The notes: generated by a model from the sequence alone, not told the origin. A DNA stretch of 64,000 nucleotides from Zygnema circumcarinatum SAG 698-1b (GCA_037447605.1 CM074807.1:1674001-1738000); one strand, 5' to 3'; numbered from the stretch's first letter, positions 6,101 to 28,896 are shown. A program made the numbers and translations.

Positions 6101-7502
6101 TGCAGTGAGCAGAGGAAGAGGTGCCTGCATAATTTAATGAAGGCTCAGGCTAAATGACAGAAAGAGTCGTTCACTGCTTTTGAACTAGCTAGATGAGAGA
6201 AGTGTATGAAACATTCGTTACAAAGCATACATCAGGTAAGAGAGCAGCAGAAGAGAATCGCGTCCATCAAAGTCCCTAAATTGTCAGCTCCGAGAACTGA
6301 AGGCAGCCGGAAATGCTTTATGAAATATCCAATCTATGTATGGCTTAAGTTGCACACCTGGCAAACTGCTGCTGCATCATGTGCATTGGCGAGACGGTCA
6401 GCACGTGATTCCCAGGCAATGTTGAGCATTCCGCCTTCAGGGTCAGACAGCTTCACTCCGTTGTCCTTCACAGGGTTGTGTGACGCTGTCACCACGACTC
6501 CAGTACACTGGCAAGTGTGCAGAGATCTCAAGGCGGCTAGCACTCCCATACGGAATACAGTTGAATCGAGAAGCTCTGCCTCAGCTCGAAAGCCGGCTGT
6601 TCCATAGGAGAAGAAAATGCCTGGAAGATAGCAGCCAATAGCATGATTGAAGAAATGTCCGAGGTGCAGACGCACAGAACAAGGCGATTTCCACGACATG
6701 AAGTGCATCAGCAGTGGACAGAGACAATTGCATGGGCTCCAGGGTAGACACGACTTACTGAAAGCCGAGTTCACATTTCCAGGAGGGCTTGGTTCCATCG
6801 GCAAAACCATAGGGAAATTATTGCTTCCTTGCTTTAAGACATTCTTCCAAATAAGGTTTCCTTAAAGTTATCATAAGCACGAGCTGAAAATAAGTTAAAC
6901 TTTATTTACTTCTCTTATGAAAATGGTTATAACTCTCATGCTGGGTGGACGAAGCATCCGCATTTCCATTTTATCTGGTTGACTTTTTTGCGCTACTGCC
7001 TCGATCAACACAAGTATCCAAAAAAAAATGATACAGCATTAGGACTTCTAAAAGGCCAGAAATTCCTGCATTGTTTTATGATCCAGATTTAGCAAAAACA
7101 AGACTCTTCTCTCAACTGAAAGCAGTCACGCTGCTCCTTAGTTAGCCCCTGAACAAGACGACTCGCTAAACAATACACACCTTCCGGCTTCGGAAAAAGA
7201 GCCGAAGCTTCCTCCAATCCGGCGAATGAGGCCCTATTGCTCTCCCCTCCGCCCATGGCCACAGCCCTGCTCGAAGCCTGCCTCCGGGAGAAGCCCCTCA
7301 ACGACAAAGACGACGACGGTCTCCTGCGCAGTCTGAGCTTGCGCCCTCGCGAGGACGAGGAGGAGGAGGAGGAGGAGGAGGAGGAGGAGGAGGAGGAGGC
7401 GGAGGACAGGGCGAGGGAGGAGACGGGCGAGCGCGCGGGAGCGCAGAGCAGCGCGCGGCGCACGGCGCAGGAGAGGCAGAGGGAGAGGGAAAGGGAGGAC
7501 AT
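3167..7502 (-). CDS. AGM1: Phosphoacetylglucosamine mutase (AGM1/PGM3/DRT101 family), multi-exon, with a long Ser/Arg-rich N-terminal extension and an apparent frameshift in the last exon
   Basis: [14 protein letters not shown] (phospho-Ser loop) and DNGVKL at ~6350-6620. DGASGVG at ~5350. [32 protein letters not shown] and [14 protein letters not shown] at 4410-4850. [13 protein letters not shown] and Y.DLPSRQLK at 3800-3960. [13 protein letters not shown] at ~3250. First exon 7502 (or 7256)-7181 joins exon 2 at 6620 in phase 1. Confidence 0.93.
7355..7400 (+). repeat. (GAG)n microsatellite encoding poly-Ser in the AGM N-terminal extension
   Basis: Perfect GAG run visible in the sequence. 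Confidence 0.95.
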
Positions 7503-7559
7503 GCCGCGGAGGGCGCCCTCCGCCTTCAGAACTTCGGCTTTCGGGTTTGAGGGTCTGTG

Positions 7560-7900
7560 TTGACGTTTAGGGTTAGGGTTTGAAGAATTACTGTACGGTA
7601 GGGTTCAGGTTTCGGAGTTTTGGGGTTTCTGGGTTTAAAGGTTCAAGGTTTACGTTTTGGGGTTTTAGGGTGAAGGGTCGGTCTCAGGGTCAGGATTCAG
7701 GGTTTAGGTTTTAGGTTTTAGGTTTCTAGAGTTCAGGATTTCAGGCACATGGATGGCCCAGGATTCGGGGTTGGGTGGTAGGGTCTAGAATCCAGGACGA
7801 GGTTCGTGGCTTACTGCTTCAAGGTCAAAGTTTGGAGTATTGTGTGTTAGGGTTGAAAGTTCAGAGTGGGGTGTTAGGGTTCAGGGTTCAGGGAGAGCCG
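7560..7900 (+). repeat. Degenerate telomere-like (TTTAGGG-type) tract upstream of AGM
   Basis: Repeated tttagg/ttaggg/ttcaggg units, which read CCCTAAA-like on the AGM sense strand. Confidence 0.7.
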
Positions 7901-8174
7901 AGGTGGAAAACACTACCACTTTTACCTATATTTGTAAACGGTTTTGATCAATTCAATTGAATTCAAGTTCACATTTTTGCAATGTTTCTGTTTGCGTCAA
8001 GCCCGAGCCCTGAAGACCCGGAGTCGGACGATTACGCTCGACTGCTTTCGTTAATTTCTTTTAAAAGTGTGAGCTTGCAGACAGCTCGCAGCAGTTGTCA
8101 CTGGTTAAACAGTGCTCGGGGTGCGTGACAAATGGTCCCTTGCAGGGCAGAGAGATGACAAGCTGAGGCGACCG

Positions 8175-8435
8175 GAGGGGGGGGAGGGGAGGGGAGGGGA
8201 GGGGAGGGGAGGGGAGGGAGGGAGGGAGGGAGGGAGGGAGGGAGGTGAGAGGGAGGGAGGGAGAGGGAGGGAGGGAGGGAGGGAGAGGGAGGGAGGGAGG
8301 GAGGGGAGAGGGAGGGAGGGAGGAGGGAGGGAGGGAGGGAGGGAGGGAGGAGGGAGGGAGGGAGGGAGGGAGAGGGAGGGAGGGAGAGGGAGGGAGGGAG
8401 GGAGGGAGGGAGGGAGGGAGGGAGGGAGGGAGGCG
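8175..8435 (+). repeat. (GGGA/GAGG)n purine-rich low-complexity tract
   Basis: Near-pure G/A tetramer repeat; it explains the spurious long Pro/Ser and Gly/Glu/Arg ORFs here. Confidence 0.95.
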
Positions 8436-9117
8436 GGTGGGCAGGCGGAGAGGGCAGGTCCTGGAGGGAACAGGTGCGGCCTGCTTGCTTTATTACTGTG
8501 AGAGAGAGAGAGAGATAAGTGTGCTCGTTATTCTGTATATGACCTAAGTGGGGCAAGGCAAGAGTAAGGCTCTTCAAGAAATTGTTGTACGGACGGAGTA
8601 TGAGTTGGTCGGCGTGGCGGCTCTGCTCGTTCTCGCTGTGGCGTGCGGACGGGCGGAAGGTGGGTCGGTAGGGCGGGAGTGGGAGAGGGAGGGAGGGAGA
8701 GAGGGAGGGAGGGGTGGGGGAGAGGAGAGTAGAGGTGGAGGGTTCGCGGACATGGACCCTGAGAGTGAGGGAGAAGGTCCGTGCTATAGTGCTGGACAGG
8801 AGAAACGAGGAGAATGAGTGTAGAGCAGGAGGAGTTGAGAAAATGGTAGAAGAGGGAGGTTTGTGGAGATGTGGGAAGTCGGGGAGGAGAGGCGGAGAGT
8901 GGAGGAGGAGAAATTGGGAGGGGAAGCACGGATAAAACTTGATTTTTTTTTCGAAACAGACAGTGGAGAGTGTAAGGGTAGAAGACTGTAAGTACGTGAG
9001 GAGGGAGTGGTGACAAAAGTGTGGGAAAGGTTCAGATTGGAAGAGTAACCCGTGTTCAACCTGTACCCCGCTAGCCAACTGAGGAGACATAATCACTTCA
9101 ATCTCAGTTGATTTCAC

Positions 9118-12100
9118 ATGATTGTTGTTGTCTTCTTTTACAACAGTGAAACTTGTGTGGTTTTCCATACGCTGGCATTGCTGCTTGTACTCGTCCTGCA
9201 TTCCGCATTGTCCAACTCCGCTTCTACGAGGAATGGGAGACATCGTCCACTAGGAAGGTCCATTCTGTTGTATTCGAAGATACTGATATACGTACCTGCA
9301 CTTGTTCCTTTCGTTATGTTTCGCTGTGCAGGGGGATGCACGGGGCTGGCAGATACATTTGACTTTGTCGCAACTAAAGATTCTTACGGGAATGACATTA
9401 ACAGTCTCTTTGTTTCTTCCGTGGAAGAATGCGCTCAGCAATGCACACAGTCCTGCCGATGTGTCTGTTTTTCTATTACCAAAACAAACACTTACGGTTA
9501 CGGATTCGGAAACAAGTTCATATGTTGGCTGAAATATGCAATTAGCATTCTCAAGGATAATGGCGGTGAAAACACATACCTACGCAAGAGTAAGTCATCA
9601 AATCTTCTGAGTTGGTATTTCTGCTCTAGTAGATAGTGTCTGCCATTGCGTAGGTTTTTTAATGTCTTTCTCCACTAATAGTCTTTCAGCTAATTTCTTT
9701 GCTCAGAACTTGCGGTACAGGAAAAAGCCAAGCTTCATGATTCACATCTGAAGGGAAATGAACTGTTCACCTACTAATCTTCGCTTTCAATTTTGAATTT
9801 AATGGGAGAGAAAAATGGGAGATTACACAATGAGAGGGAGTGAGGGATCGAGAAGAACGGTAAGAGGAAAGTTCTGGCGAAAGGTTTGGATAGACAGAAG
9901 CTGAGGAACAGGGAGAGTAGGCGGAGAGAGTCATTCTGTTAAGCGAATGGGGCTGATATGCATGCTGCTTCTGCTCGCCAGCACATCACATACCATGCAT
10001 CTCAACTGTTTCCTTCATCGTGATCTACATAATTTGATGCATTTTAAAGACACGGATGACTTTGAAACGCGACAATCTCTGTCAAAAGGAAGAATCAACC
10101 TAAATGCAGATAATCGAACTTTTTCGGTACGATGCGCCGTCAATTGGAATTAGTCCTGAATGCGACCATTTCTCCCCTCTCTATCTGGTTTGGGTGGTGA
10201 ATGCTTTTTTCAGAGCTTGGTTCTTACCCTTGTGCTGGACTCTTAAACGAATATGACCGCTATGATTATTTGAACTCAGAAGGGTTTGAAATAGGCGAGG
10301 ACCAATATGTAAGCTCCATCGCTTATTGCGAAGCGTTCTGCAACAGAGAATGCCTCTGCCTCGCCTATTCAGTCATCGATCGAGGTGATGGTGGCTTTAC
10401 ATGCTCAATAAAATACCGTACTGGCGACGAGAATATCAACCGGGGTGTTGTTCAAGCGACGAGATATGGGTATGTGTTCAATGGCAGGTCAAGATATCAA
10501 GTCTATTACAGGTGCAGAAAAACAAGTCGAGCATCAAAGGTTCTAGGTTTGGTTCATTCAGGTTGCAAAGCTGATTACATGAAGTAGAATAAAGCGCACG
10601 ATGGAAAGTACACAAGACATTCAGCACAAAAGGGTAGAGAAGGACCGACTCGTGAAGCATGCCAGACTCCGAAACATTTTTCGGTTTGGCCCTGTAGCTT
10701 GTTGTGAGAGCATGTCTTTGTTTCCCGCCAAACTAAAGCTAATTTGTGTCATATCTTAGCGCAATCTGCACTTACATCATTGCAATCAACGGGTATTGCA
10801 GGCAATTTGGCTTTCAACAGGCCCGCTTTTCAGTCCAGTACTTTCAACACTAATCGGTTCGGGCCATATCCAGCACTGAATGCGGTGGATGGCTTCCTTG
10901 ATGGTGTATGTTCNNNNNNNNNNTCTTTGGAGGCTATGGAGGTACGTCGTCTGCTCTTCCTGCAAACCAACTCCCTCCTGTTGCAACTCCGACGTGCCGG
11001 GAACGTGTGTCGCAAGGGAAATAAAAAGTTGCAGAAGATTACAGAAGATAAATCTAGGGCGGAGTGGAAAAGAAGGAATCTCCCTCTAGCCTCGCCATTT
11101 CAGCCTTTTCTCGTATTTCTTTTAGATAATCCGATCCAGAATATGTACTAATCAGGAATCCGATCGAAAGTCCTTCATGGAGCCACTTTTAGATCGTCAG
11201 AGCTCGCCTTGTTCCATGGCTAAGAAAGGCGATCTTTCGGAAGACGATCAGGTCCTCTGACTGAAACATGGAGCGCCTTTGTAAAATTCCACCATTTCAT
11301 TTCATGGAGCACACAGACGACGCGAGAGTTTCGAAGGAAGGGATTGCCGCGTTTCCAACTATGACAGCATCCGGCGGCTCCTTTATTACCTTCACGGCTT
11401 CGGGAGCTGCAAGACCATCTCTCGCTCTCCTCCCACTCCCCCTCTCTTCCCCGCACCTCTTCCTCTTCTTGTCGCTTCCTTCTCGACCGTCCTCACTCTC
11501 TGCTGCACAGAAGGAGAGGGCTCTGTTGCAATATTGCATTGCAGAAGCTATGCGTCTCAGAGCATTTCCTTCGCTCTCATTTTTAAGTTTCCCCAAATTT
11601 TTAGAAATATAGGATAGTTAGGGTTTTGAGGGTCTCCTCTGCGCTTATGCCTTGTGGCAGCTCTCCCTCCTCTCCCCTGTTCAGAACTCTCCTCTCCACT
11701 TGATGCCAGTCCTCACACCACGTTCTGCTTCTGCAGTGGAGGTAAAAGGTGATGAACATTTTAGAAGATAAGGGAGGGATGGAAACCAAGAGAACTCCCG
11801 ATAGCCTCTCGGTGCGGAATGTTTATCGAATCAGTTTAAATACCGTTTTTCTGGAACGAAACCTCTTCCATATTTCCTCCTAGAACCACTCTTAGCCTCT
11901 TCAATCTAATCCACAGCTGAAACAAGGCAAGCTCCTGGACGTTGAACGGATTTTTCAACTGAAGAAGCTCACGAAGCGCCCTTTCAGTTCCACAATTCAC
12001 AGAGCAGCGCGCACATGGAGGATGCGAGAGCGTCAAAGAGAGAGCAAGCGCCACATCTCAGACTATGACAACATCCATATGCTCGTCCCTTGCCACCATT

Positions 12101-15100
12101 AATCCATACATCAGTTCTTCACATACGAAGGTAGCTGCCAGAGCATCCACCTCCTCTCCTCTCTCTCCCTCGTCCACTCGCTGCTCCCTTCTCGGCTGAC
12201 CTCTACTTGTGCTTCAAGAGCGGGAGAGGATGTTGCTGCATCTGCCGAAGTAGCACGGAAAAAGCCAATGCTGCCAGCGGCCTCGCATTTCTACCATCAT
12301 TCATCCATACATCAGATCTTCATATAGCGCTTCAAGAGCCGCAAGAGCATCCTTTTTTTCTCCTTCCTCTCCCTCTCCCTCTCGCTCTCCCTAGCCCTCT
12401 CCCTCACCTTTTCACGACCGACCTCACTTCCTGCTTCAACAGCGAGAGAGGGTGCTGCTGCTGCTGTCGAAGTAGCATCGCAGAAGCCATGCCTCTCAGA
12501 GCTTTTCCATCGCTCTCAATTTTAGGTTTCCCAAACTCTTATAATTTTTCATTCTAAACTTTTACATGTTTACATCTCCCCCATATCTAAAGCGTATTAT
12601 GGTTTATAGGTTCGCTCTCGGCGCTGCTGCGAGATGACAGCTCTCCCTCCTTCCCCCTCTTCAGATATCGCCTCTCCGCTCGATGCCAGCTCTCCATCAG
12701 CTCCTTCTGCAAATTTAGGGTTCGTAGGGTCATCAGAGCTTTAAGGGTTTCCCCAGCTGGAATTCAGAACTGCGATGAGGATCTGAAGGGAGTCCTGAAG
12801 CGAGTACATTCGCAAAACGTTATAAATTTAACGGCAGAAGGAGGCTCCCTGCCTGCTGTTCCGCAGAAAGCAGTCCACGATATAGACGACGAGCTGCACG
12901 TGCAGGATAAAATTGCATGGAAAATTGGGGTTGAATTTGTTTAAAATCAATTACATATATTCTCCTACCCGCATCTCGTTTTGCAGGAGAAGTGTGCGCT
13001 AACACAATCATCGTTCGTTATGGCAGTGATATACTATTGTTTAGTTGTGCTGTTGTGCGTCAAACCGTATGCTGAAGCCACTGCTACGAAAAGAATTCAA
13101 GAAAGGTTATAGCTGGGAACGTCTCGGCCTAAATATTCCTATGAATAGGATGTGCGTGATTGTATGATTCTAACTCTTCCCAAAAGATTGCCGATTACAT
13201 ACATAGGCTGAATGATTAACCGATATATGAAGTTCGTTCGTTTCCACCTCTCTTTGTGCATAAATCCACATTGCAGAAAATTTGGCTCTGCAAAAGCCTG
13301 CCTTGCAGTCCAGCGGTACAACTGACCCGGCTTGGCGAGCGGTGGACGGCTCTGATGGCGGCGGCATCTATTCTTCGGGCACATGCGCAAGCACGAGCCC
13401 AGCCCCCTCCAACTGGTGGAGGGTGGACCTGGGCGCGAGCGCACGAGTGGACTCGGTCGAGCTGTGGGGCCGCACCGACTGCTGCGCAGACCGCATGAAC
13501 GGAGCGGCCGTGTGGATCGGCAACAGCGGGTCCACATGGAACGCCGACAGCAACGAGGAGTGCGACCCCGGGACCGTCTTCCTCTACTCGAACGCGAGCA
13601 GCGGCTTCCCCTTCGTCAAGAGCTGCGCCCTCTCCTTCGGACGATTCCTCTGGGTGGTCATCGCCAACGGCCAGCCGCTCACTTTGTGCGAGGTGAAGGC
13701 TTTTGGAGCGATTTCAGGAGCGCTGGGAGGTACGCCCTCTGGAATACCGCCTGCTCCTTCACAGCTTTTTTTTTTTTTAATTCCTCGAACAAAACAAAGG
13801 GGGTGAAGAGGAGGAGCTGCACCCATGCCTGCGGAGCGGCGGATAGCCCTAAACCCTAAACCGTACACCATACACCGTATACCCTACACCTTAAACCCTA
13901 CAGCTGCCCCCCCTTCCCCTCCCCCCCTCCAAACCCTAAAACCTTAAACCCTAAACCGTAAGCCTACACCCTACACGCTACTGAACCCTACACTCGTCCG
14001 CCGGCCCCGCCAGCGAGCGCAGCCGCCGCGTGCGGTCACGCGGCTCGCGCCCGTGCACGCCCGCGCAGACCGCAACCCTAATTCTGCGTTCCCCCGCTCA
14101 GTCGCGGAACCCCGACGCCTACTCCCTACAAAAGTCATTTGAAATTAGAACTACTGCAATATTGTATGCATGTCATACAGGCGCTTCTGCAGGTCAAGTG
14201 ACTGTAGACTTCGTCTGGCAACGAAGTTTAGTATCTTGAAACATAGTGCATCGTGAGCGTGCATCTTTTTTTCGCTCAGATGTATAACACAGACGGTGTT
14301 TTTCTTGCCTTAGATTTATCCATGAGGGTCCGATTATTACAATGACTTGCCAATTCTCACCGATCATCAGCAAGACTGTCGCTGGATGGCTCCTTCGTTT
14401 CCTAAGAAAGGAGGTATTTTGTTTTTGGCAAGTTCTAGAACCAATGTTCAATGTTTCACTGCAAACTCGGCCCAAACGCGTTTGACGTAGATGTTGGACT
14501 CATGCTCCATTCCACATTCAATGTACCTCCTTGGCTTAGATACAAGGGAGGTTCAACAGAGATAGCAAATGCCTCGTTTTTTCCTCCCCTTCTCTCCCTT
14601 CTCTTCGTCACTATCTCTCGCTTTGGCCGAAGGCAAACGGGCAAGGGACCGTGACAGACCACACACTCACGGATCGGGGACGTGCTGCCTTGACATTGTG
14701 GTTGCTTTCTCGGAGAGAGTCCCTAGCTTTGACGGGCCTAGCGATACGTTTAAATTTCGCACTGTAGTCGCATGGTTAACCCAAGATTCTGATTTGCGTA
14801 TGTGCGCCCGCTCCTTCACTATGTTCGGCTGTGCAGGAGCATGTGTTGGAGGCCTAGCAGAGGCGTACGACTATGTCTCAAATACGTTTGCTAATTTAAA
14901 TGATATTGGCAGCGCTTTAGTTTCTTCTGCGGGAGAATGCAAGCAGCTTTGCACAGGCTTCTGCCAATGTGTCGGTTTTTCTATAACCCAAGGAAACGGT
15001 TACGGAGACGGAAGCCAATTCCAATGCTGGCTCAAATATGCAACAGTCCCTCTCATGAATAGTAGCTCTGCTCACACCTACATACGCAGAAGTAAGCCAC

Positions 15101-18100
15101 TGTACCCTGGTTTGAATCCTTGGTTCTGTTCAAGTCAATAGTGTCTGAAATGGTTGAGTATTCTGACACGTCTGAGCTGTGCCTTCACCAATAGAATCGT
15201 AACAAATGTCTTTGCTCGACTTTGACTGTATAGGAAAGAGTTAGGGCTCATGTTTTACATGTATCGAGTGTCCAACTCAGGGCCATATACGATTCAATTT
15301 TGGTTATTCTTGTGAGAGTATGCTGACCCATGTCAGAACTTGGCAAATTTTATGATCTGGTTTGTTTGCTTCAACGCTCGCAGAGTTCTCTCCGCCTCCT
15401 CGAAGGTCGCCTCCATCTCCCCCTCCATCTCCCCCTCCATCTCCCCCTCCATCTCCCCCTCCATCTCCCCCTCCATCTCCCCCTCCATCTCCCCCTCCAT
15501 CTCCCCCTCCATCTCCCCCTCCATCTCCCCCTCCATCTCCGCCTCCTCCGCGATCACCGCCACCTCGGCCTCCTCCGAGGCCGCCCCCGCCGCCACTCTC
15601 TCCGGAGGGTAAGAAAGGTACATATGCTGTTGCTTTGCTCGGTTCTTATCTTTTTTCCCCTAAAGAACCTAAGATTCTCGACGGGATGCCTAGAGACTTG
15701 AACGGTATTTTAACCCGACGAGAATATGCGGCGATGTCGTCCTCGTTACTTCAAACCCTAAGCTGGGCCGTCCAGCCATGTAGGAAATGTGTCATGTTTT
15801 GGACAGCGGGAGCTGTCTCAGCCTCCAGTTGCCTATTGGGCTTACTGTGTGACTTAAAACTAATATAAGACTTCTCCATGGCTGTCGTCTGAATATTGAT
15901 ACAGTTGTTGCTCTCTTGGAGTTCAAGCGGGCGATCGCAAACGATGTTCTTAGAAACTGGAAGGCAGCAACCCCTGTATGCAGCTGGGACGGTATAGTAT
16001 GCACCACAACATTGCCGACAAGAGTCAACAATCTGTGAGAATCCTTCCCTTTCACCTCTTCATTCTGTTGAAGTGAGCTCGAGTATGGAGAAATTGATTA
16101 TTGTGGCTCTTGAAGTTCAAGAAAAACAGATGTACAAAACGTTAATTTCCTGCACTTCGATGCAACTAACGTTAAGCCACAAAAGCAAAATATTGACTCA
16201 GAATCATTCACATTTTGACCTCTGCTGTAAAAATAGTGGTTTCCTATCTGAAATGGGAAATCCTTTTTAGATTTAAGAGTCTCGTAGTAAATGAATCTGT
16301 GTGGAGTGTTGAGATTAAGGAATTCGGGTTCAGAGCTTGAGAGACGAAACGAAGGTAAGGCTTAGGGATCGGTATTTGAGAGGGAGAATGAACAGATCAG
16401 GCTTCCAAGGCTACAGTTAGGGTTCAGGGTTGGCGGCCTTTCATCTATGAGAGAGCTTCAGGGGTCCCAAGGGCGGGACGACCTCCATGGGGAGGTCTTC
16501 AGGGCTTGAGGGTGAAGCTCTGTGAGAGAGAGTCTTCAAGGACACAAGAGGGGAGGGCCTGTGAAAGGGGCAAAAGGGTGAAGCCAAGGGGCTTCGGGTA
16601 GGTTGCCGTTCACAAATGAGGAGGATCAGCGAGCAAAAGGGTGAACAAATGAAGCGTGGAGGCTTCGGGAGTAATCGCATAGGGACACAAAATGGGGTGA
16701 TATTGGTGCTTCAGAAGTGCGGCCATGTAGGCCATGAGGGAAAGCCGTGGGGGCGCTTAAAGGTGCTGTCACGAGGGCTCAAGGAAGAAGTCAAGAGGAT
16801 TCAAGGGAGATGGCAAGGGGGCTTGATGATACAGAAGAGTGACATTGTGAGAATGGCCGGGAGTGACATTTTGCGAAAGATTAAGAGTGACGTTGTGAAG
16901 AGGGGTCAGAGAGTGTTACAGACGAGAGAGAGAGAGAGACAGAGAGTGAAAGACAGAGAGGTGAGAGTCAAGGAGAGAGTGGTGTAGTGACAAGGCTTTC
17001 GGATCATAGGGCTGAAGCTGTGGGGAACCTAAGACGAGCGAAAAGTGGGAGATTTGGAAGTTAGAGGCTTGCTGTCTATGATTGTACGGTTTGAGCTTTG
17101 AGAATTAAAGCGAAGAAAATAGGTGGGACATAAGGTGCAATGGGAAAAACCAAAAAGGAACACAGAAATACAACTGAAGACTTACGTCTGACGAAGTATG
17201 CCACTTATTATGTCCGACATGAAAAAAATCTCGTTGAGAGGATTAGAATTTTCCAAGGCGGCCAACTGAAGTGAGTGTGTCGGTTTTGACAGCTTATTGA
17301 GTGGAGGTCCGCTGAGCAGTCAGTTGATCGCCACGATTTCACCCTCTATCGGCATCCTTACAGCTTTGGTGGAACTGTGAGCATTCCTTCCTCTTTTTTG
17401 AAATGCCAAAGTTTGACCTATGGCCAACGTTGGCATTTTTTCACATGAATGCTTTCGTGCATGATTGCGAAATCTGTATTTGGCAAACTCCTTATACCTG
17501 GGTGCACGCCGCTCACTCATAACTATATTTGTTGTGGACTTATCATCGAACAAGCCACACGAACTTCCTCAAGAAAGGCAAGAGCATGTATTGTGAGGTC
17601 GGTGGGTTCGCACTTGCTACGGGGTGTAGCCCGTGAAATTGCAAATTTAAACGTTATCTGTAGGGTTTGATCAGCTCGTTGGGATTCTGTAACCTTTCCC
17701 ACGAAATTTTGTTCCCAGGAAGATCGAGGTGAACGTGCATGCCTGCATTCGCGGTCGCACCTCCCAACGATGTGCACAGAGGCCATATTGCAACATGATT
17801 TTATTTTCGTTATTCCAAAAGATAAAACCGCCGTGCTTTGATTAAGTCTAAAAGTGATAAATGTTTGAGTGAACATTGACATGTTCGATGGAGCCAGGAC
17901 TGTGCCTCCATGGGTTGCATGCAAAAATCGGCTATACAAATTTTCGATACAACTAGATCTGGGTTGGGTAATTTAAAATACTCCAGAGAAGTAGTCAAAT
18001 TTCGAATGCGTGACCTGAATCTGTAATATGAAAAAGTATTTTCTTTCAAGTGTTTTTGCCTTACTTGTACCTTCTGGCTGTGCAACTGCCATTATCGACT

Positions 18101-21100
18101 GCTCAGATGCGCTTTGTAGCAACGTTGCAGGGATTTGTCGAACAACAAGCTCAGCGGAGTCATCCCCGACACGCTCGGCCAACTTCAGAATTTGAAAAAA
18201 TTGTAATACCCAATTTACATCATTCATCATTATTTATTTATTTGTATTTTTTTTGTAATATCCAATTTTCATCATTCTTTTGGGAATGGTTAAAATGTGG
18301 TAACTCGCCTGCTACAATCAAGAAGTATGAAAGAATGGCTTCTTTCTTTGAAGAAATGGACGCCTATTCTGCCATTGGCTATTTCGTTTCATTTCCCAAA
18401 ATCGGTCGGTTTCATCGTATCTTGCTTCGACAGGAATTTTGTCTATACGATTTACTTGCTTACTATGGGTGGCTTTCACTATGGCAGGTCTTTGTCAAAT
18501 AATCTGTTGACGGGCGCTATCCCCTCTTCCTTCAGCAACTTGACCTCTCTTACAGAGATGTAAGAATTTGCCGAGATTACGAGTGTTTGCATTTCTGATG
18601 TGGGCGCTAAGAAAAGCAAGGCTGCTTGACCGAACGGAATTTCAATCCTGCGGAGATGTTGTGAGTCGAAGAGTGAATCTGAACCATGTCCACTGAAACA
18701 AATCGGATTGACCTTGACTACTTTCTCGGCTACTTTCTTGCAGATCACTGTCACTAAATCAGCTTACTGGGAGGATTCCCTCCTTCTTCGGAAACCTTCA
18801 GGCCCTTTTGAGCCTGTGAGTGTCATTCTGGTCCTTACTATTTTACTTTGCTGTTTCAGAAACCACTATTAGTTTCTGACATCATGCAATAAGACATAGT
18901 GCAACAACTAACTAGATGTAAATTACCATAAGGCAAGTGCTCGCAATTGAAAACGACCAAGCAAACTCGTCCATCGGTCCTATATCGGAATGAACGGAGA
19001 ACTGGCGACTCTAATGAGAGAGGCTTCAGAATGAGAGGCACGGGAAGGTTTTAAAATCAATCAGCGTTTTGTGCATGGTAGTTCAAACTTGTTTTCGAAA
19101 ACGTAGGAGTTGATGAATGAAGCTTTTCTTCAAAATTTCTTAAACATATGGGGAACACCACATTGGAAAACGCAGGTGACTGATAATTAGTATTTTTTAT
19201 TGAGGGAAATTGGACATGGCGCATGCTGGGCTCACAGAAACCTTGGAAGCAATCAACTGAGCGGCCCAATTCCTGCTTCGATCGGTGCACTCAGAGCCCT
19301 CCAAGAGCTGTGAGTTAGTCTGCTTCAAGCCTTATCAATCACTATCGCAGAAATCGTAATTTCTGCCAAGAAAGGGATTCTGCGCATCTATATGACAATG
19401 AGCTCATCTCGAATACTCGCCACTTTGCATGTCTTGGTGATGTCAATGCCCAAAGTTTCGATCCGATTTACAATGGCCAAAGATGTACCCTTATTTTTAT
19501 GTTGCTTCGTCTCCGTGGCGGACGTGACAGGCGTTTATTAAACAATCAATTGACTGGAAACATTCCAACAAGTTTTGGAGGACTCCTATCCATTCGGACT
19601 TTGTGAGCAAACCGAACAATGACTTCGTTGATCTGAATAGATGAAAGGAAGCTCATGATGACGAGCTTACAATGAAATTGTAGAAAGTAGGACTATTGCA
19701 CTTGGCGTCTTTTTTTCAGCATTCACTGGAGTCCTCTCACCGTCGCAAAACAACACACTAGAATTGGAGACAAATAACTTTAGAAAGTCGGTAAACTGTT
19801 GGGATGTGAAGCAACTGTTGAAGTGAATTTTCTTGCAGATCTTTATCAAACAACTCGCTCATCGGCCCAATCGTGTTTGACTTCGGATTACTCGTAAACG
19901 TGGCCTTGAGCTTCGACAACAATTACTTTTCGGGTGAACTTTCGATTACTGTGAATGGCGAGCCACGGAACTGCGCTGGAATTGACGTAAACTGTTTTTC
20001 TGGTTTAGATTCAGACTGCAGCGAGCAAAGAGATGACAATTCCTGCAAGAACTTCTGTAATGCAAAACAGCCGCAGGGCGCGTGTGGTGGTAACGGGTTC
20101 TGCTCTTACAATGAGAGTCAGCCCTTTTGTACTTGTAATGTTGGGTACAACAGCAGTACAGATAAGAGCACTTGTGTTTTTGGTGAGTTCTCGACTCTGC
20201 TTTCCTATTCTGATTGGTTTCGGTGTGGAATATATTCTGGTTCAGAGTCTTCTCGCATGTCACCCAGTCAAGGGTAAACGTTTTGAGGACATTTCCAAAA
20301 TGATCATCCAAGATGTCACTGCTTCAAAAACGATATGCGATGCATGTTTATTCTACAGTTTTAAGTCCCTAGATTACGCATGTTATACAGCAGAAATCCT
20401 CTTCATAATTTTGCATTGCTCCTGTCGACCTGTAGTGGCCCGAGGGCTCGGCTTAAACGCAACCCTCCCCATCACACCGTCTCCAAAATCGAACCGCTAT
20501 TTCCGATATGCGACGACGGGATATTTGCGGCAGCGGAGCGGCAAGGCTTCGTGGCTCGTGGCCACCGCGTGGAATTGGACGGATGAAGGAGCGGTGCAGG
20601 GGGTCAAGGATCAAGGGACCTGCAGTCAGTGCTTACCTCCTGCTTCTGCGTTTGAAAGTCCTAAGGCATTATTATGGCTGTGTTGTCCTTCTCGTCACAT
20701 GGTCAAGGATTACTTCTACATTGCATTCGCTTTCGTCTTCAACAAGCTCAAGCTTGGCACTGTAGAGACATAGAGCCATACTGTCTTTTGCCGTTTGAGA
20801 CATTGTAGAGCAGCATGCTGACATTAGGACATACAGAACTCATATGCATGTCAGAGGCTGATTCAGATGCTGCTTTCTTGCAGACGCTTGTTGGGTATTT
20901 TCTGCGATATCTGCGATTGAAAGTGCAATTTTCATCGTGAACGGAGGGAAAGTTCCAATCCCCCAACTGGCAGAACAGCAGGTCCTGACCTGCTCCCCCG
21001 GCGGCAAGACCTGCTTGTCGGGGGGATGGCCCCAAGAGACGCTCGACTATGCGGCCAACAATGGACTCACTTTGGCGGCGAACTTCACGGGACAAGCGAG

Positions 21101-24100
21101 CTGCGGAAAGGTAGAAACAAATGCGAAATCTGAGAAGGAATCATGGCATTTTAATTTGAGTTTTACGATCTAGCAAAAGGAGGTAGAAGAAAGAAAGAGA
21201 GACCTGCACAGGAACAAAGCAATTTTAGCTCGTTTTTTTGGTTTTCCAGTCTGCAAGAAGGAAACGAAGAGCACAGAGTCAGGATGCTTGAATCCCCTGA
21301 ATTTTCTCTCTCCTTCATGGCATCAGACATTTTTGCATAATCAGGAATCACTTCTTCATGGAGATGGATTTGATTTTTATAATGGGTAAGTAAGTTGCAG
21401 GGTGACAATAGGTTGAAAATTACATCGTTTGAGCAAGTGGCCTTCAACGGCTGGCTAGGCTTACTGCTCATTCTGCAGCAGCAACCGGCCATTGTGAATG
21501 TGGAAGCGAGCGGTGCCAACTTCATCAACTACAACGGAGTTAGTAATAACTTGGCTCCCTTGAACACTCGTCATTTCTTTATTTTTCAGTTCGATCCTCT
21601 ACCATTTGGGAAAAACGACCTTTCTGCTTCGATATTCTCAAGACGCTCATGTCATGACTCTGAAGTGTTGGCATCAGCGACATTGCTTACAGAACTTCAT
21701 TTCCCATATTCATTTGACAAAACACTCATGTTTAACAGCAAAATCCATTTCGTTGCAGGACGTATTTGACGATGAAGATTGCTTCTCCAACGGAGTGGAT
21801 CACAGCGTGGTGGTGGTCGGCTACGACTTGAGCGCGGATCCACCCTTTTGGATCATCCGCAACTCGTGGGGCCAAAACTGGGGCGAGCAGGGCTACATGC
21901 GGATCAAAATATCCGCCGGTTTGGGGATATGCGGGATCAACAGCCTTCCTGCTCTCATGCCGGTAGTGAAGTCTGCGGGTGAGAGGGGTTCAGCACTCGC
22001 TTCTTCATTGCCTTGAATGTTGGCGTTGTAGCGTCTTTATACGCGAGGAAACTAAGCAACCTCAAACCTCCGAACTTTATCTTGGAGGGCTAATTTTCGT
22101 CATTAGAAGTTTTGCGAACTGCCTTTGACGCTTGGATATAATCAAACAACATCTTGCATCATTCAACGAGGGGTGGATGTTTTGGAAGGAGATTAGCCAA
22201 CCTCCTAAAGATATTAAAAAAAAATAGCACAAAATCAGCCATGTCTAAGTTTACATGTTGAGGCATCTCTTGAGAACATGTCTAACTATGCACATGAGGT
22301 AATGTTACACGCCACATGCGGCTTTGATTGCGAGGTACAAGGCTAAGACTGTTCTTGTGGTTGTCCCATCAAATTCAATCAATCACCTAAACGACGTTTT
22401 TCACAGAGCTAACTGGTCAGTTTGTTGAGAGGATGGCGACATTTCTCGAAACTCAGCGAGAGAATGTGTGTACGCTTGATTTTTTGGACTTTGTCGACCA
22501 TTTCACCCTCTCAGTCTCAGCTTTTAGCAAGGAATAAGTATTGATCTTGTTCGTACTCTCGTGTCTGATGGGTGCAGATGATGATCCATGCTTTACAAGA
22601 AACTACGCCAGTACAGTTCTGACGGCCACAATTGGACCAGGTACAATGAACCCGTGCGGAAATGGTGTGTGTACTGTAAATGGTCCAACGAACCTATGCC
22701 GCTGCTCGAAGGGCTTCACGGCAGTGACCAACAGCGACAACTCGCAAACATGTGCACCACGTGGGTGACCAATTCCGTTATTGTGTCGATGTTCACGTCT
22801 GCGCATGTCTGTCATTGAATGAACTAACCTTCGAATTCCTTCTTCATCAAATGGTGTACCACTCCGTGCATCATTTCTGATCAACGCGTTTGCATGTAAC
22901 AACCCAGACCAATGACGTACAGTGTAATTGCTCTTCACCTCTGAGTTCCATTCACTTCAATGCAAGTCTAGTCTTCCAAAAGGCGCTGCTTCATTGCTGT
23001 TCCATGTCGTACGAGTCGACCCTAAAAATCCTAAAAACCCTAAAAACCCTAAAAACAAAACCTCCTCCTCCTCCTCCTCCTCCTCCTCCTCCCTCTCCTC
23101 TCCCTCTCCCTCTCCCTCTCCCTCTCCCTCTCCCGCGCAGTCTCCCCCTGCACCTTCGCCGCGCGCAACCCCTGCGGCGCGGGCACGTGTCTCAACGCGG
23201 CGGCGCCACCTGGCACGTACGCCTGCGCGTGCCCGCTCGGGTACGCCGCCGACTCGCCGGACGGCGCCCACACGTGCGTGCCAGGTCAGATCGTCTTGTC
23301 CTTTCTGAAACCGATGAAATGGTTCGTAAGAAAGGTCATGACTGCACGGTTCATTCTGCACCAATTATCAATTTCACATTGGAGGAGCGTTATAGCGATG
23401 CAATCGAACGCAACCTCTTCTTGAGTTGAAGAACATGGAAGATGAATAGTGGCGGGTCCAGAACTGGAGGTTAGGAGGGGGTTGACCAGTGAGTTGGGAA
23501 AACAAATCTGAAATTTGAGTGTATTTTTGCTATTCAAAGGCGATCAGTCGGTAACAGCTTTTCAAAATTTGAGTGTGGGTTAAGGGCCCCCCAGCACCCC
23601 CCCGGGGATCGGCCTCCGACCCAAAGTATGTATATAACAGTCTTACCTAAACAATCACACGAATGTCTTATCACTTTTTGCTACTCTTTTTCTCAATGAA
23701 ACTACGACTCGTTTCTGAGGGCTTACCAACCCATAGCTCTGATTGGTTTGTATGTCGACTTCAGCCGCAATAGCTACAGGATTGCAGTACATTACTGTGC
23801 CAGCCGGCGCCAACATGAGTTGCTACGACATATTTAACATGTATGGCATCAAGGGAGACGTTTTCGTAGCCCAAAATCAGGTCAGTAAGAGAGCGCACAT
23901 CTCTCACAAGAAACTTTCGTAGATCTCTCGCACTTGTCGCAAATTTACATCTAGGAAAGGCTACAAGCTGGTGTTTTTACAACCTCTGTTTCTTCCCCTA
24001 CTACGCTCTCTTTGTGCTCATGTTTGCTGTGTTCATGCCACAATCTCTTGTGCGCTTTGCAGAGGCTGAATTGCCTATTGCCCTTGCCGGGGGGTACAGT

Positions 24101-25323
24101 GGTGAATGTCACCAATTTCAAAAACTGTTCTGTGGTGTACGCTGTCAATGAGGTCAGCTTCCATCTTCTGTGTCTCCACTTATTAAGCTCCTCTTGATTT
24201 CTATTCTCCGAGTTTAATGTCTGACTCATGTTGTACGGCTCTGCTGAGGGTTGACTTCTCCGTTCCTACTTTTTCTTCAGGGTGACACGTGTGAGGCAAT
24301 TGCATCATATTTCAACATTACCTCGATATATGGGCTCGGCTCTCCCAATCCGGACTTGGACTGCTCGCAGCTCCGACCTTTCCAGCAGGTACAGCCTATG
24401 AACGTGGAAGGGGCGAGGCTCAATTCTTAACATGTTCGCTAAAATTCATCTGATAAGATGAAAGCGTGAAGCACAGCATAGCTTGTGTGCTCAAATGGCT
24501 TCATATTGTGAACGGCTATTTGCTTAAACGCACTGCTGCTTAATAATAAAGTCAAAACAACTTTTCTTGAAGATCTGATCGAATTCTAGAAGCAGCGCGA
24601 AAAATACGTACTAATTAAATTCTGCAGTGTACGAGGCACGGCATGCCATCATGAAAAGACTTGAGTGGTATCGAATTATGGGTGCAGGTCTGCATTCAGA
24701 GGGGAGCTCTTGTCTATCCGGGGCCATGCACAAACCTTTACGATGTCCAGTCCGAGGAATCCTGCTTCTCCATCATAAGCAAATACCTGAACGGAAGCAT
24801 TTGGAAGTTCTACACACTCAATCCCGGAGTGTATTGCGGCAAGTTGTTTCTCTCCCCGAGCGGCAGCGCTCCGATTGGGCAGCAGGTAAGAAAAGGACAA
24901 AGGAAAGCGTAGGGTCATGCATATGTGAAAATCGTTACCATTATCGTTTGCATTTCCCTTTAAAAAGTTTATATCAACATGGACTGAGTGAATGAAGGTG
25001 TGGTCGGCTTTTGTGGTTGAATTGGGTGTGTGGCGGTCTTGTCAATCGCAGAATGATTTGTTTTTTTTTTTTTTTTCTAACAACTGAACTATGTCTTACC
25101 TGCATCCTCCTTGCAGGTCTGTCTGGAAGCTGCCGATCTCGGCGCCAGTCCCACCTGTACCGGCAACACATACACGTTGAAGACAGGAGATAAATGCGCT
25201 AGTCTTAGTAAATGCTTCACAAAAAGGGAGAGTTTTAAAAAGCTCAATCGCTTCGCGTGCACTGGTTTAGCCTTGAAAAAGAACAAGATTATTTGTGTTC
25301 CTAAGACGAGCTCATGCTCGTAA
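9118..25323 (+). CDS. Giant secreted mosaic protein: SP-PAN-PAN-FTP-FTP-PAN-(SPPP)n-LRRNT-7xLRR-EGF-papain C1A protease-EGF-EGF-4xLysM (~1,600 aa predicted)
   Basis: Manually assembled exons: ~9118 (signal), 9332-9589, 10214-10525, 10802-10941 (spans N-gap), 13277-13729, 14837-15091, 15384-15608, 15905-16034, 17293-17376, 18131-18202, 18488-18559, 18744-18815, 19238-19309, 19531-19602, 19839-20182, 20436-20624, 20884-21110, 21401-21538, 21759-21978, 22578-22760, 23141-23284, 23774-23880, 24063-24152, 24281-24388, 24688-24885, 25117-25323 (TAA). All junctions from 13277 on are GT-AG with matching phases. The 5' part (9118-10941) is phase-compatible but contains a gap, and the signal-exon junction is unresolved. 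Confidence 0.8.
9332..10525 (+). other. Two PAN/apple-like domain exons (9332-9589, 10214-10525)
   Basis: Pattern s.eeC...C...C.C..fs.......C.LK....: VSSVEECAQQCTQSCRCVCFSI..CWLKY and VSSIAYCEAFCNRECLCLAYSV..CSIKY. Confidence 0.7.
10802..10941 (+). other. F-type lectin (FTP/fucolectin) exon 1, interrupted by a 10-N gap
   Basis: GNLAFNRPAFQSS...ALNAVDG before the gap. After the gap, (V)FGGYG|gtacgt matches the end of the second FTP exon (AFG..LG|gtacgc). The gap probably hides ~300 nt of the domain. Confidence 0.7.
13277..13729 (+). other. F-type lectin (FTP/F5-F8 type C) domain exon 2
   Basis: NLALQKPALQSS..AWRAVDG..CAST..NWWRVDLG..V.L.GRTDCCADRMNGAAVWIG..C..GRFLWV..LTLCEVKAFG. Confidence 0.9.
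13850..13990 (+). repeat. Intronic telomere-like CCCTAAA tract
   Basis: ccctaaaccctaaaccg... and aaaccctaaaaccttaaaccctaaacc. Confidence 0.8.
14837..15091 (+). other. PAN/apple-like domain exon 3 (paralog of 9332-9589)
   Basis: VSSAGECKQLCTGFCQCVGFSI..GYGDGSQFQCWLKY..TYIR aligns residue by residue with PAN exon 1. Confidence 0.75.
15384..15608 (+). repeat. 12-bp tandem repeat (TCTCCCCCTCCA, ~11 copies) encoding an extensin-like (Ser-Pro3)n stalk exon
   Basis: Splice phases on both sides (cag|15384, 15608|gtaag, both phase 1) select the SPPP frame. Confidence 0.85.
15905..20182 (+). other. Plant-type extracellular LRR region: LRRNT_2 cap, 7 repeats, Cys-rich C-cap and EGF-like module
   Basis: VVALLEFKRAI..LRNWK..VCSWDGIVC; ATISPSIGILTALVEL; DLSNNKLSGVIPDTLGQLQNLKKL; SLSNNLLTGAIPSSFSNLTSLTEM; SLSLNQLTGRIPSFFGNLQALLSL; NLGSNQLSGPIPASIGALRALQEL; RLLNNQLTGNIPTSFGGLLSIRTL; then CGGNGFC..FCTCNVGY..C. 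Five repeats are exact 72-nt phase-2 exons. Confidence 0.92.
20436..21978 (+). other. Papain-family (C1A) cysteine protease catalytic domain, 4 exons
   Basis: WNWTDEGAVQGVKDQGTC|NACWVFSAISAIES (oxyanion Gln, catalytic Cys); LAEQQVLTC; CLSGGWP; VDHSVVVVGY (His); [20 protein letters not shown] (Asn); GICGI. Confidence 0.93.
22578..23284 (+). other. Two EGF-like exons (22578-22760, 23141-23284)
   Basis: NPCGNGVC..LCRCSKGF..QTCAP and NPCGAGTC..YACACPLGY..HTCVP. Confidence 0.8.
23774..25323 (+). other. Four Cys-containing LysM repeats (C-terminus)
   Basis: YAVNEGDTCEAIASYFNI..NPDLDCSQLRPFQQVCI; YDVQSEESCFSI..LNPGVYC..GQQVCL; YTLKTGDKCASL..LNRFAC..KIICV; plus a more divergent first repeat. Confidence 0.82.
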
Positions 25324-26819
25324 ACAAGCGGCTGCATGAGGCAATGGCGTGTTTGGGCATGACCGGCTGAAAGACAGCAAGAGGGCATTTCCAACTTGTA
25401 GGGTATGTGAGGCAGGAGGGGGTGGTTATGACTTTTGGGGTATTTCAGACAGCAAGAGTGTGTTTTCTACTTCTGGGGAATTTTACTGGGACGGCTGCAA
25501 CGGCGGGCCCTGCTCCACCCGCTCGTGGAACACAGTGTGCTATGGCGGAACGGACTTGCAATGGTCGTAGAGGAAGATGGCCCCATATAGTGCACAGGAA
25601 AGGATCAATATCGAGAGCCCATGTGAAAACATAACAAAGTAAAGTAAAGCGGTTGAGAAAAGAGCGTTGCTTGATGCAATGTTGTTGTAGAGGGGGCTAA
25701 GCCTCCTTTAAGCATAAACATACATAAATTAAAATGAAATAAAAATAAAAACAAAAAAAAAGGCTGAATTTTCAAAATCTGAGGGGGGGCTTAGCCTCCC
25801 CACCTTGTATTTGCAGGTCCGCCAATGTGAACGAAGTGCCATCCATGGTCATGGCCCACGCGGACGGGCATCGTTGGATGCATGTGCGTTGCATGATGTG
25901 GCGTGCATGCGCGATATACATACATATATACATACATACATACATGTGATGGTCCATCCATGACATCCATGGTTCATCGCGCGCTGGAGTCTGGACCTTG
26001 ACCGACCGCCCGGAAGCGAAGGTGGCAGAACAGCACAGAACCCGCAACCCGTGAGTGAAGCTTTCCTCTGTTCTGCTCTGAGCAGGCGCGCAGACGGCGC
26101 TGCTGCTGCTGCTGCTGCTGCTGGTTTGCGGACCCTGAAGCCTTTTCTGCATTCGCAGACAGAGCGTTCCGTTTCTGCAGATAGAGGGCTGCTCTTCTGC
26201 AGGCTGCTCTTTAGTCGTCCGTTACGTACGGCTCTGCGCAACGGGAGCAGCAGAATTGCAGGCGAAGCTGGTCCGCCTTGGAAGGGGGCGGAGAGGAGTC
26301 CGTCCATCATTTCTGTGAGCGGCAGGTGAGTGCTTAATTCAAGGAGAGGGCTTTCGCCTTTCAGTCGGTGGGCTTTGGATTTGGAGATCTGGACTGGTTT
26401 ATTTGAAAAGCACACCTTTTGTGTTCGCGGTCCTTTCTGCCTACGGTTTGAAGGGAAACGCGATAAACGGCGTCGCTGCTTGCTTGGCTTAATCAGTTGA
26501 AATTATCCTTTCAGGTCTGTCTTCTGGATTTTAGTTAGTTTGCATGCCATCAAGTGATGCCCATGTTGAGGTTGATGTGTCCGTCTGTACGTCTCCAGGA
26601 GTCCATGTCCTTCAGGTGGCCAATCCGCCTGTAGCTGCTCCGTGACTGTTTCCCTCACAAGATGCTGATGAAGGTGACTGAGAGTTCGCGTTTCTATTAG
26701 AACAGTTGACGAAAGCGATTCCCAATATGCGCCTCACTCACGCTAATTGTGGTGCCTGCGTGTTTCTGTATTTTTGCTGGCTCAGGGTATCGAAAGCCTG
26801 CAATTCAAATTGTTCAGGC

Positions 26820-28896
26820 ATGCCACGATCCCCTTCCCCCTCACGCTCTCCTGTTAGGAGGAGCCGGCGATGGTCTCCGTCGCGGTCTCCAGATGCGCGG
26901 CACAGTAAGCGTGGCAGGCGGGATCGCTCCCCGAGGGCCAGGTGGGGGGGCCGTTCCTGCTTCTGCCCACGCCGTCAGTCATCACTATTCCACTTAGCCC
27001 GTGTTTCCCACTCAGTGCTTAAGTTGACAATCCAGCCCTTACGACCACAAGGGACTCCCGACGTTTCAGCGGTTGACGCTTCGCCCGTGTCCAAGGGGGG
27101 AAAATGAATCAAACTAGTAGCAGCAGGTGACTGTGGACTGTGTAATCCATCGTCTGCTTATGCCCCCTTAGGAGGCCTGTTCGCTGGGGTTGGAACGACC
27201 TATTATCCCCCTGATGCTGCCTGAGAGGGCGTCGTTGTCATAGTGCATGGCATGACAGGCAGCCATGCGAGAGCTGCCGGTTGCCGGGATTTGCTTCGAG
27301 AGCTTCTGCTGCTGCTGTGGGTCGGTACGGTACGCCTTCTGCTGAGCCCTTGGCCTGGAGGTCTCCTTCCTCAGACATCATGGTATTGTTTAGATTCATA
27401 CCTCACTCCAGTCGGCCAGTCTGCCATGTGACACTGCATGATGATGCTTGAGCCTGTCGGAGGGTGTGCTTGTGGAGAATGAAATAAGGTGGCTGAGTGA
27501 GTGAGGGCTTACAGGGTTAACCCCTCCACCATGTAGCTCCACGTGTAGCTCAGGCGGGTTTGGACTTCCTGCACAATCGGGCACTTAAGACCGTTGTGCT
27601 AGGGACGTAGCTGATTATGGCTTGATATCCCACAAGTGGGAGGGATGCAAAAAGGCATTTCTCCCGCATCCGCAATAAAACCTATTCACAACATTCCGAC
27701 TGGGCTAAATTTCCTTTTAGAACATCGCGGGGTGTAGGCCTCCCAAAGTTAAACTGGAGTGGTCACCTCCAGAAGTCAAGCAGATTTCATCTGTTTGACC
27801 GACAGTTTGTCCATGAGAGAATGTTTACCCTTGCTTCTGACAATGTGTCTGTGTTGCAGGCGCTCCCCTTCTCCGTGGCGCAGCAACAAGAGGCGCAGTC
27901 GCAGTCCCATCCGGCCCCGCTCACCCAGAAAATCAGGGAGTCCTTTAGTGTCCAATGAGCGCAGACGTGCTCTCGAAAAAGCTCGGGAGGAAGAAGAGCG
28001 TGAGAAGAAGAGGTAATAGATTATTTCTGTCAACTTACTTGTCGAGTGGATGGTCCTTAGTGAAGGCGTTCGGAATGGACTGACTGGTTCTATAAACTGA
28101 ATTCGTATTTCTGCACTGCTATTAGTGTAAATAGCAATTTTGCGTCATCATCTTTAAAAAAATAGTTCTTCTGATAGGAACACGGTCTTTGGGTTTATCT
28201 GATTTAGAAATGCGTTGCGCTTCACTGCAGGCGGCAGCAGGAGGCAGAATTACAGCTTATCGAAGAGGAAACGGCACGACGAGTTGAAGAAGCTATTCGG
28301 AAGCGGGTAGAGGAGGAACTAAGTTCTGCAAAGATAAAGGCTGAAATTGCTGCGAAGGTAGAAGAAGGCAGACGTAAAATGTTTGACGAAGTTGCTGCTC
28401 AGCTCGCTGCGGAAAAGGAGGCCCAGCTTGCCACGGAGCGACAAAAGGAGGTATGCAAAAGTGTCTTGAGGTAGTCTGGATCAATAATGCCTAGGTTATT
28501 TCAGGCAGTACCTCCAACTGTTGCATTATTGGCAATTAGCTTGACAGAGGTTCAGTTGGCTAAGCAAAGATGACAGCCTTGTGCAAGTAACTGGGTTTGG
28601 CTAACTTTGGGAGCGATGAATGTGGCGTGCAGGAGGCCGCGAGAAAGGAAAAAGAGGAACTGGAGCGGATGTTGGAGGAGAATCGTCGCAAGGTGGAGGA
28701 GGCACAGAGGAAGGCTGCGGAGGAACAGGCACGTGAAGAAGAGCAGAGATATAAAGAGCTGGAGGCTTTGCAGAAGCAGAAGGAAGAGGCAGCTCGGCGG
28801 AAGAAGTTAGAAGAGGAGCAAGCGAGGCTGGAGCAGATGAAGGTGTTGGGGAAGAAAAATGCTCGACCAAAGTTGTCCTTCAGTTTAGGAAAGTGA
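26820..28896 (+). CDS. ARGLU1: Arginine/glutamate-rich protein 1 (ARGLU1/UPF0430 family), 4 exons
   Basis: RS-rich N-terminus (MPRSPSPSRSPVRR..). Exons ~26820-26941, 27861-28012, 28231-28450, ~28633-28896. Motifs LIEEETARRVEEAIRKRVEEEL, ELERMLEENRRKVEEAQRK and the C-terminal LGKKNARPKLSFSL. Confidence 0.93.

Follow-up and report, generated by a model that had tools for sequence, protein, structure and literature searches.

A gene on the plus strand of Zygnema circumcarinatum SAG 698-1b, at positions 9118–25323 of a 64,000-nt stretch (GCA_037447605.1 CM074807.1:1674001-1738000; hereafter the window, from whose first letter all positions are counted), probably yields a single secreted chain of ~1,600 residues. 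This chain would carry a lectin-like head, a rod and a body made of leucine-rich repeats (LRRs), an EGF-like module, a papain-type (C1A) protease, two more EGF-like modules and four LysM modules, and its role would most likely be in extracellular defence. The best reading of the encoded order is signal peptide, PAN, PAN, F-type lectin, F-type lectin, PAN, Ser-Pro3 rod, LRR cap, eight LRRs, EGF-like, papain (C1A), two EGF-like and four LysM. The gene thus read is apparently that of a secreted modular C1A protease with a PAN/F-type-lectin head, of a family without a published description.

The host DNA reads as eukaryotic, with short GT..AG introns, and between 9118 and 25323 it contains stop-free plus-strand blocks with recognisable domains. 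The layout is one module per exon, and the head modules are phase 1-1. The exons of the gene model are as follows.

9118–9244, plus strand: exon 1, ATG and signal-peptide-like stretch; in-frame stop just upstream, hydropathy peak at residues 12–31
9332–9589, plus strand: PAN/apple 1, phase 1-1; Pfam PAN_4 (E 1.7e-5) and PAN_1 (E 2.7e-4) fall slightly short of their cut-offs
10214–10561 or 10214–10525 (both ends phase 1), plus strand: PAN/apple 2; Pfam PAN_2 22.4 bits, cut-off 21.1
10802–10941, plus strand: F-type lectin 1, split by an N gap at 10914–10923; both ends phase 1
13277–13729, plus strand: F-type lectin 2, one exon, phase 1-1; matched by 3CQO, 1K12 and Pfam F5_F8_type_C_2 (NedA-like, E 7e-15)
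14837–15091, plus strand: PAN/apple 3, phase 1-1; Pfam PAN_4 E 5e-5, just below the cut-off
15384–15608, plus strand: Ser-Pro3 rod (extensin-like stalk), phase 1-1; recognised in translation
15905–16034, plus strand: plant-type LRR N-terminal cap, phase 1-2; Pfam LRRNT_2 37.6 bits, cut-off 20.7
17293–17376 (84 nt), 18131–18202, 18488–18559, 18744–18815, 19238–19309 and 19531–19602 (72 nt each), plus strand: six LRR exons, phase 2-2, one 24-residue repeat apiece
19839–20182, plus strand: last two LRRs and Cys-rich EGF-like module 1; contig joints at both ends, Pfam EGF-type matches weak
20436–20624, 20884–21110, 21401–21538 and 21759–21978, plus strand: papain (C1A), four exons, all joints contig-backed
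22578–22760 and 23141–23284, plus strand: EGF-like modules 2 and 3, phase 1-1; joints according to contigs, modules according to Pfam
23765–23880, 24063–24152, 24281–24388, 24688–24885 and 25117–25323, plus strand: four Cys-stabilised LysM modules in five exons, ending in TAA; joints contig-backed

Splicing and expression of the LRR-to-LysM body

The original prediction for this DNA described 22 exons that splice with consistent phases into ~1,220 codons. An exon-by-exon rebuild from 13277 to the TAA at 25323 recovered these 22 exons with AG acceptors and GT donors throughout; they total 3,671 nt, and their frame has 1,223 codons followed by TAA and no internal stops. All the domain types that had been named for the fusion protein were also recovered by Pfam, Protein Data Bank (PDB) and fold comparisons or in the translation, the EGF-like and LysM modules with weaker matches than the others.

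Seven sequencing runs from the same organism contain about half of the sampled words of 15300–25299. Splice junctions were checked with Logan contigs from four runs (three studies) placed on 19400–25399; the runs carry the labels 'RNA?' or '?', and their cDNA origin is inferred from spliced joints. Eleven GT..AG joints agree with the model to the base (19602|19839, 20182|20436, 20624|20884, 21110|21401, 21538|21759, 21978|22578, 23284|23765, 23880|24063, 24152|24281, 24388|24688 and 24885|25117). For the twelfth, 22760|23141, loose contig ends spell the start of the next exon and the row is lost at a simple repeat. The joints 19602|19839 and 20182|20436 are present in three to four runs and 21978|22578 in four. 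One contig of 1,303 nt spans the LRR exons and EGF-like module 1 and reaches the first three papain exons; its 444 nt located 5' of 19839 are the exact sum of the six predicted LRR exons (84 + 5 x 72). In addition, a loose end ahead of 19531 spells the end of exon 19238–19309. Depth is 50–500 in exons and near zero in introns, and contigs extend past the TAA into the 3' untranslated region, to 25399. Because spliced contigs show all joints between the sixth LRR exon and the final exon, the LRR-EGF-papain-EGF-EGF-LysM x4 body is one spliced, expressed transcript. Junction mapping on this interval, with support for twelve junctions and the 3' end, thus bears out the part of the original prediction that placed the body modules on one polypeptide.

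Other forms of the transcript were also observed. A minor isoform, found at low depth in one run, has the joint 20181|20883, an in-frame skip of the 189-nt papain linker exon; judging from its translation, the product would be protease-dead, with loss of the mature N-terminus and the oxyanion Gln. The intron 23285–23764 is partly or fully retained in contigs of three runs (23255–23791), and in one run an alternative donor at 23625 is joined to 23765. Within 21457–21893, contigs that are 95–99% alike carry consistent variant letters, and a loose end spells a variant of the start of the 21759 exon; they show that one or more very close paralogues or alleles of these papain exons are expressed as well. 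A second copy of the body was not found within the 64-kb window.

Domains of the body and the head

Peptidase_C1 (PF00112) matches two exons of the protease with 42.8 bits (E 8e-11) and 64.3 bits (E 2e-17), the cut-off being 20.7, and there are 165 PDB matches. In alignments with ficin and caricain the catalytic Cys falls on their residue 25, and the His and Asn align to those of actinidin and cysteine proteinase B. The oxyanion Gln stands six residues ahead of the Cys in QGTCNACW, the stretches DHSVVV and IRNSWG are also present, and the Cys positions of the three papain disulfides are kept in the translation. Since Gln, Cys, His and Asn are all kept, the protease is catalytically complete and apparently active, in agreement with the intact protease that had been predicted. 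C1A proteases normally need an I29 prodomain to fold. The first papain exon comprises a linker of about 62–63 residues followed by the mature N-terminus, and Pfam gave no match of any kind in this linker exon (E up to 1) and none to an I29 prodomain in the preceding exon (E up to 5).

Ahead of the protease stand eight plant-type LxxLxLxxNxLxGxIP repeats of 24 residues, half of which (4/8) have the strict motif. The EGF-like modules are less clear; module 3 matches Pfam cEGF and EGF_CA at E 5e-5 to 2e-4, a range that reaches 2e-3 when EGF is included, each score lying below its cut-off, and modules 1 and 2 match more weakly. For the tail, Pfam LysM was matched by exon fragments at E 0.013 and 0.026, below the cut-off, and a profile of the four modules matched horsetail chitinase A (5BUM, E 5e-5), fern chitinase A (4PXV, E 1.4e-4) and LytE (E 3e-3). 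An AlphaFold model of the LysM3 exon, made from a four-row alignment, reached a pLDDT of 46, too poor for use. By these profile matches the tail modules are read as LysM like those in fern chitinase A.

No further sequence follows LysM4 in the protein, and the gene model contains neither a kinase exon nor a hydrophobic C-terminal tail. A 19-residue hydropathy window found no transmembrane-like stretch in the model other than the signal peptide, an LRR strand and the catalytic helix. The signal-peptide-like start claimed earlier is supported by the hydropathy peak in the 9118 exon, and the accompanying claim of no transmembrane or kinase domain also stands. The protein is accordingly predicted to be soluble and secreted, and not an LRR receptor kinase or a receptor-like protein.

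In the head, F-type lectin 2 matches solved lectins over its full length, including FBP32 (3CQO, E 1.8e-29), eel agglutinin (1K12, E 9.8e-13) and 2J1R (E 2.4e-8). Its CAST aligns to CTHT/CTHS, so that the fucose-binding His is Ser; both Arg are kept, and the His-Arg-Arg triad is incomplete. Fucose binding by this second domain is doubtful because the binding-site His is replaced by Ser. The binding site of F-type lectin 1 falls in the N gap. The F-type lectin identity named in the original prediction holds, and the change at the fucose site is a caveat to fucose recognition. Among the PAN domains, PAN_2 is above the Pfam cut-off for domain 2, and PAN_4 is just below it for domains 1 and 3. The AlphaFold model of PAN3 (pLDDT 69, pTM 0.64) has as its best fold matches the apple domains of factor XI/prekallikrein, HAI-1 and Eimeria/Toxoplasma PAN (probability ~1.0, TM 0.58), and the S-locus receptor kinase is also among them. 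The rod consists of about eleven SPPP units followed by RPPP-type units and contains no Tyr; it is best described from its translation as extensin-like, and not as a cross-linking extensin, because Tyr cross-link motifs are lacking.

The 5' exons were delimited by sites and phases. For exon 1, GTCCAC at 9245 is the only phase-1 donor that excises a second, odd hydrophobic stretch, leaving an intron of 87 nt; the alternative is an unspliced run-on to 9589. A donor GT at 9258 was rejected for its wrong phase. The PAN1 exon has a TGTGCAG acceptor and a GTAAGT donor, and PAN1 is 48–49% identical to PAN3. The Cys pattern of PAN2 is conserved with PAN1 and PAN3, and a strong-looking donor at 10470 for its exon was discarded, being in the wrong phase. 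The stretch 10802–10913 begins after an ATTGCAG acceptor in phase 1, and its opening is 47% identical to that of the second F-type lectin. Beyond the gap, 10924–10941 reads FGGYG followed by GTACGT, and the second lectin exon ends in GALG followed by GTACGC. Because the flanks mirror the start and the end of the second lectin exon, both in phase 1, the assembly gap is placed inside the first F-type lectin exon, with ends that are mutually in phase. Gauged from the 453-nt second lectin exon, ~300 nt of the first are unread.

One gene or two, and the proposed role

It is plausible, from the sites and phases of the exons, that the PAN-PAN-lectin-lectin-PAN head lies on the same mRNA as the body. 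The head exons (9332–15608) have (T/G)GCAG-type acceptors like the RNA-verified ones, GT donors and phase 1-1 throughout; the LRR cap exon is phase 1-2 and every LRR exon is phase 2-2. An ATG with a hydrophobic first exon and a donor in the right phase was not found in any interval of 10942–17292, the only one being at 9118. The locus lies between two housekeeping neighbours: on one side the minus-strand gene for phosphoacetylglucosamine mutase, which reaches to about 7.6 kb, and on the other, from 26.7 kb on, the ARGLU1-like gene. One gene of ~1,600 codons is favoured because the head exons are internal in type and phase 1-1, a second signal-peptide exon is lacking and the bounds are set by housekeeping genes.

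Several points weigh against this reading. Contig-backed splicing is confined to the body, and the joints upstream of 17293 are drawn from the genomic sequence. The match of phases is weak evidence, as shuffled modules are all phase 1-1 and would also fit across two genes. The ~300 unread nt could hide a stop or a frameshift, the RNA nature of runs labelled 'RNA?' or '?' is deduced from the spliced joints, and a C1A protease without a prodomain would have to fold and be kept latent in some other way. The first of these points, with RNA contigs examined on 19400–25399 only, would also suit two adjacent genes that the original prediction had merged, one for a secreted lectin, with signal peptide, PAN, PAN, F-type lectin and further modules and possibly the rod as its end, and another for the LRR-papain-LysM protein, as would the 2.3-kb repeat-rich interval with the assembly gap that sits within the head. 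Such a pair is nevertheless distinctly unlikely, since the body would then be without a start codon and signal peptide of its own, none compatible occurring in 10942–17292, and the exons from 9332 to 19602 are all of internal type, with an acceptor, a donor and no stop.

If the gene does encode a single chain, the rod and the lectin modules would place the protein in the wall or mucilage. Fungi, oomycete-like parasites or bacteria may offer the LysM tail a docking site in their GlcNAc polymers (chitin or peptidoglycan), and the head modules may attach to other glycans or proteins. The LRR-EGF part would bind a protein partner, a substrate or an inhibitor, and the protease would cut proteins at the docked surface. 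A role in extracellular defence, as a targeted extracellular protease, seems most likely because of the analogy with the apoplastic papain-like proteases of land plants and with the pheromone-induced C1A protease of Volvox. Among the possible roles defence ranks first, followed by remodelling of the wall when cells divide or conjugate; a bait without catalysis comes a distant third.

GlcNAc polymers are not known as wall components of conjugating green algae, and the LysM modules are matched by the chitin-binding ones found in chitinase A of ferns and horsetails. Both points speak against an endogenous job. In that case the alga's own proteins, in wall or mucilage, would be remodelled or lysed by the protease when cells divide, conjugate or form zygospores, and the lectin and LysM modules would bind self glycans. 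This explanation is unlikely. In its favour, algal wall glycoproteins typically have such a Ser-Pro3 rod and such PAN and F-type lectin modules, expression of the gene is seen in each of the four runs examined, apparently without a specified microbial challenge, and the Volvox C1A protease responds to sex pheromone according to a passage in PMC2474614. It is very improbable that the papain domain is non-enzymatic and acts as a bait to protease inhibitors from pathogens or as a module for binding, in which case the LRR in cis would report the event. The absence of an I29 prodomain, with the LRR-EGF part in its place, and the low-depth 20181|20883 isoform that skips the exon with the oxyanion Gln would agree with such a bait, but the catalytic residues and the Cys positions of three disulfides are all retained, and the chain has no membrane or kinase part to relay a signal.

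Among living organisms, conjugating green algae stand closest to land plants, and the gene touches the question of which share of the plant extracellular immune toolkit is older than land plants. Three of its components, the plant-type LRR, LysM and the papain-like protease, stand here on one soluble chain, to which lectin modules of animal and bacterial flavour would be added. The phase-1 layout with one module per exon points to head swapping by exon shuffling, and it illustrates a way in which proteins of this kind can be built up and given new heads. A more tentative proposal, held with little confidence, is that the family represents a single-chain forerunner or parallel of the 'guarded protease' of land plants, with a papain-type protease fused to an LRR sensor, LysM and variable lectin heads. 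Should the protease be active and glycan-targeted, the family would represent a new class of targeted extracellular proteases and could serve as a tractable system in which to study domain shuffling in immunity or wall biology.

Neighbouring sequence, relatives and known systems

The genes on both sides and the repeats in and near the locus are given below.

3397–7604, minus strand: phosphoacetylglucosamine mutase gene, upstream neighbour, 5' end near 7.6 kb; AMG1_III E 9e-37
26700–28900, plus strand: ARGLU1-like Arg/Glu-rich gene, downstream neighbour; Pfam ARGLU E 4e-21; an Arg/Ser-rich exon stands before it

Phosphoacetylglucosamine mutase is an enzyme of UDP-GlcNAc synthesis, and its gene is divergent from the LysM-bearing gene over ~1.5 kb of repeat-rich DNA; the presence of a UDP-GlcNAc enzyme beside a LysM-bearing gene is probably a coincidence. 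The shared upstream region at 8100–9050 is a purine-rich simple repeat with a GC skew of +0.42. A 381-codon minus-strand open reading frame at 8098–9243, which overlaps the start codon at 9118, was rejected as a gene because it lies on this repeat and reads as Ser/Leu/Pro simple-repeat text. Within the intron of 1.26 kb that separates the cap from the first LRR exon, the plus strand at 16300–17250 is strongly purine-rich (GC skew +0.24) and has long stop-free frames rich in Gly, Glu, Arg and Lys; this stretch is possibly a decayed repeat or element. At 17530–17590, inside the intron 17377–18130, an LRR-like DLSSNK... is found in frame 1 with the acceptor absent, and it looks like a decayed LRR pseudo-exon.

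The last papain exon led to a 64%-identical protein encoded on Logan contig L004 of run SRR9302961, from another organism. This is a genomic contig of 2,377 nt, AT-richer at 39% G+C. Its order is that of the body, with the C-terminal part of the LRR, a Cys-rich module, a Pro-rich linker, a four-part papain, two EGF-like modules and the start of LysM1, at 40–64% identity to the body. It is thus alike in a colinear arrangement from the LRR end through papain, EGF and EGF to the LysM start, and different in intron pattern and G+C content. In L004 a Ser-Pro linker stands directly ahead of the protease, and the last papain part continues into EGF2 with no intron in between. By this alignment the body architecture exists in at least one other organism, and the uniqueness implied by the original prediction does not hold. 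Other searches gave simpler proteins or no match. A phmmer search of protein collections with the F-type lectin exon returned only multi-lectin proteins, at most 43% identical and without the other domains of this protein. Word-indexed protein searches with pieces of PAN3 and of the papain linker gave no match. The matches to the last papain exon in JGI metagenomes (three ordinary papain-like genes with no accessory domains) and in the ESM Atlas (papain fragments only) were set aside. Full-text literature searches around papain and LysM in zygnematophytes or charophytes, and around F-type lectins in streptophytes, brought up no paper that describes this family, and no experimental study of a member was found.

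Several known systems share parts of the predicted protein. The LysM of fern and horsetail chitinase A (4PXV, 5BUM) are the best profile matches of the tail and have the Cys positions CT..Y.V..GD.C..I and NP.L.C in common with it; they differ in that LysM is there carried on a GH18 chitinase and here on a protease. The F-type lectins FBP32 (3CQO) and eel agglutinin (1K12) can be aligned to the second domain along its full length and have the CC motif and both binding-site Arg in common with it, whereas these fish lectins have the binding-site His where the second domain here has Ser. In Volvox, Amon, Haas and Sumper reportedly described in 1998 a pheromone- and wound-induced cysteine protease, VcPap-11, with chitin-binding LysM-type repeats on a hydroxyproline-rich spacer; it is said to have no LRR, EGF, PAN or F-type lectin modules and to follow another domain order. 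A passage in PMC2474614, citing Amon et al. 1998, presents VcPap-11 of Volvox carteri as a sex-pheromone-induced C1A protease outside the cathepsin B/F/H/L groups, and a passage in PMC13473537 that cites Kitaoku et al. 2019 has the companion Volvox chitinase carrying LysMs. As far as these passages describe it, VcPap-11 resembles the Zygnema protein in being a secreted algal C1A protease and differs in coming from a chlorophyte, not a streptophyte.

A further parallel, from land plants, is tomato Rcr3 with Cf-2, in which an apoplastic C1A protease and a plant-type extracellular LRR cooperate in defence. Both cases team an extracellular C1A protease with a plant-type LRR. In tomato, however, these are two proteins, with an I29 prodomain on the protease and a membrane-anchored LRR, whereas the Zygnema gene combines them on one soluble chain with no prodomain, membrane segment or kinase.

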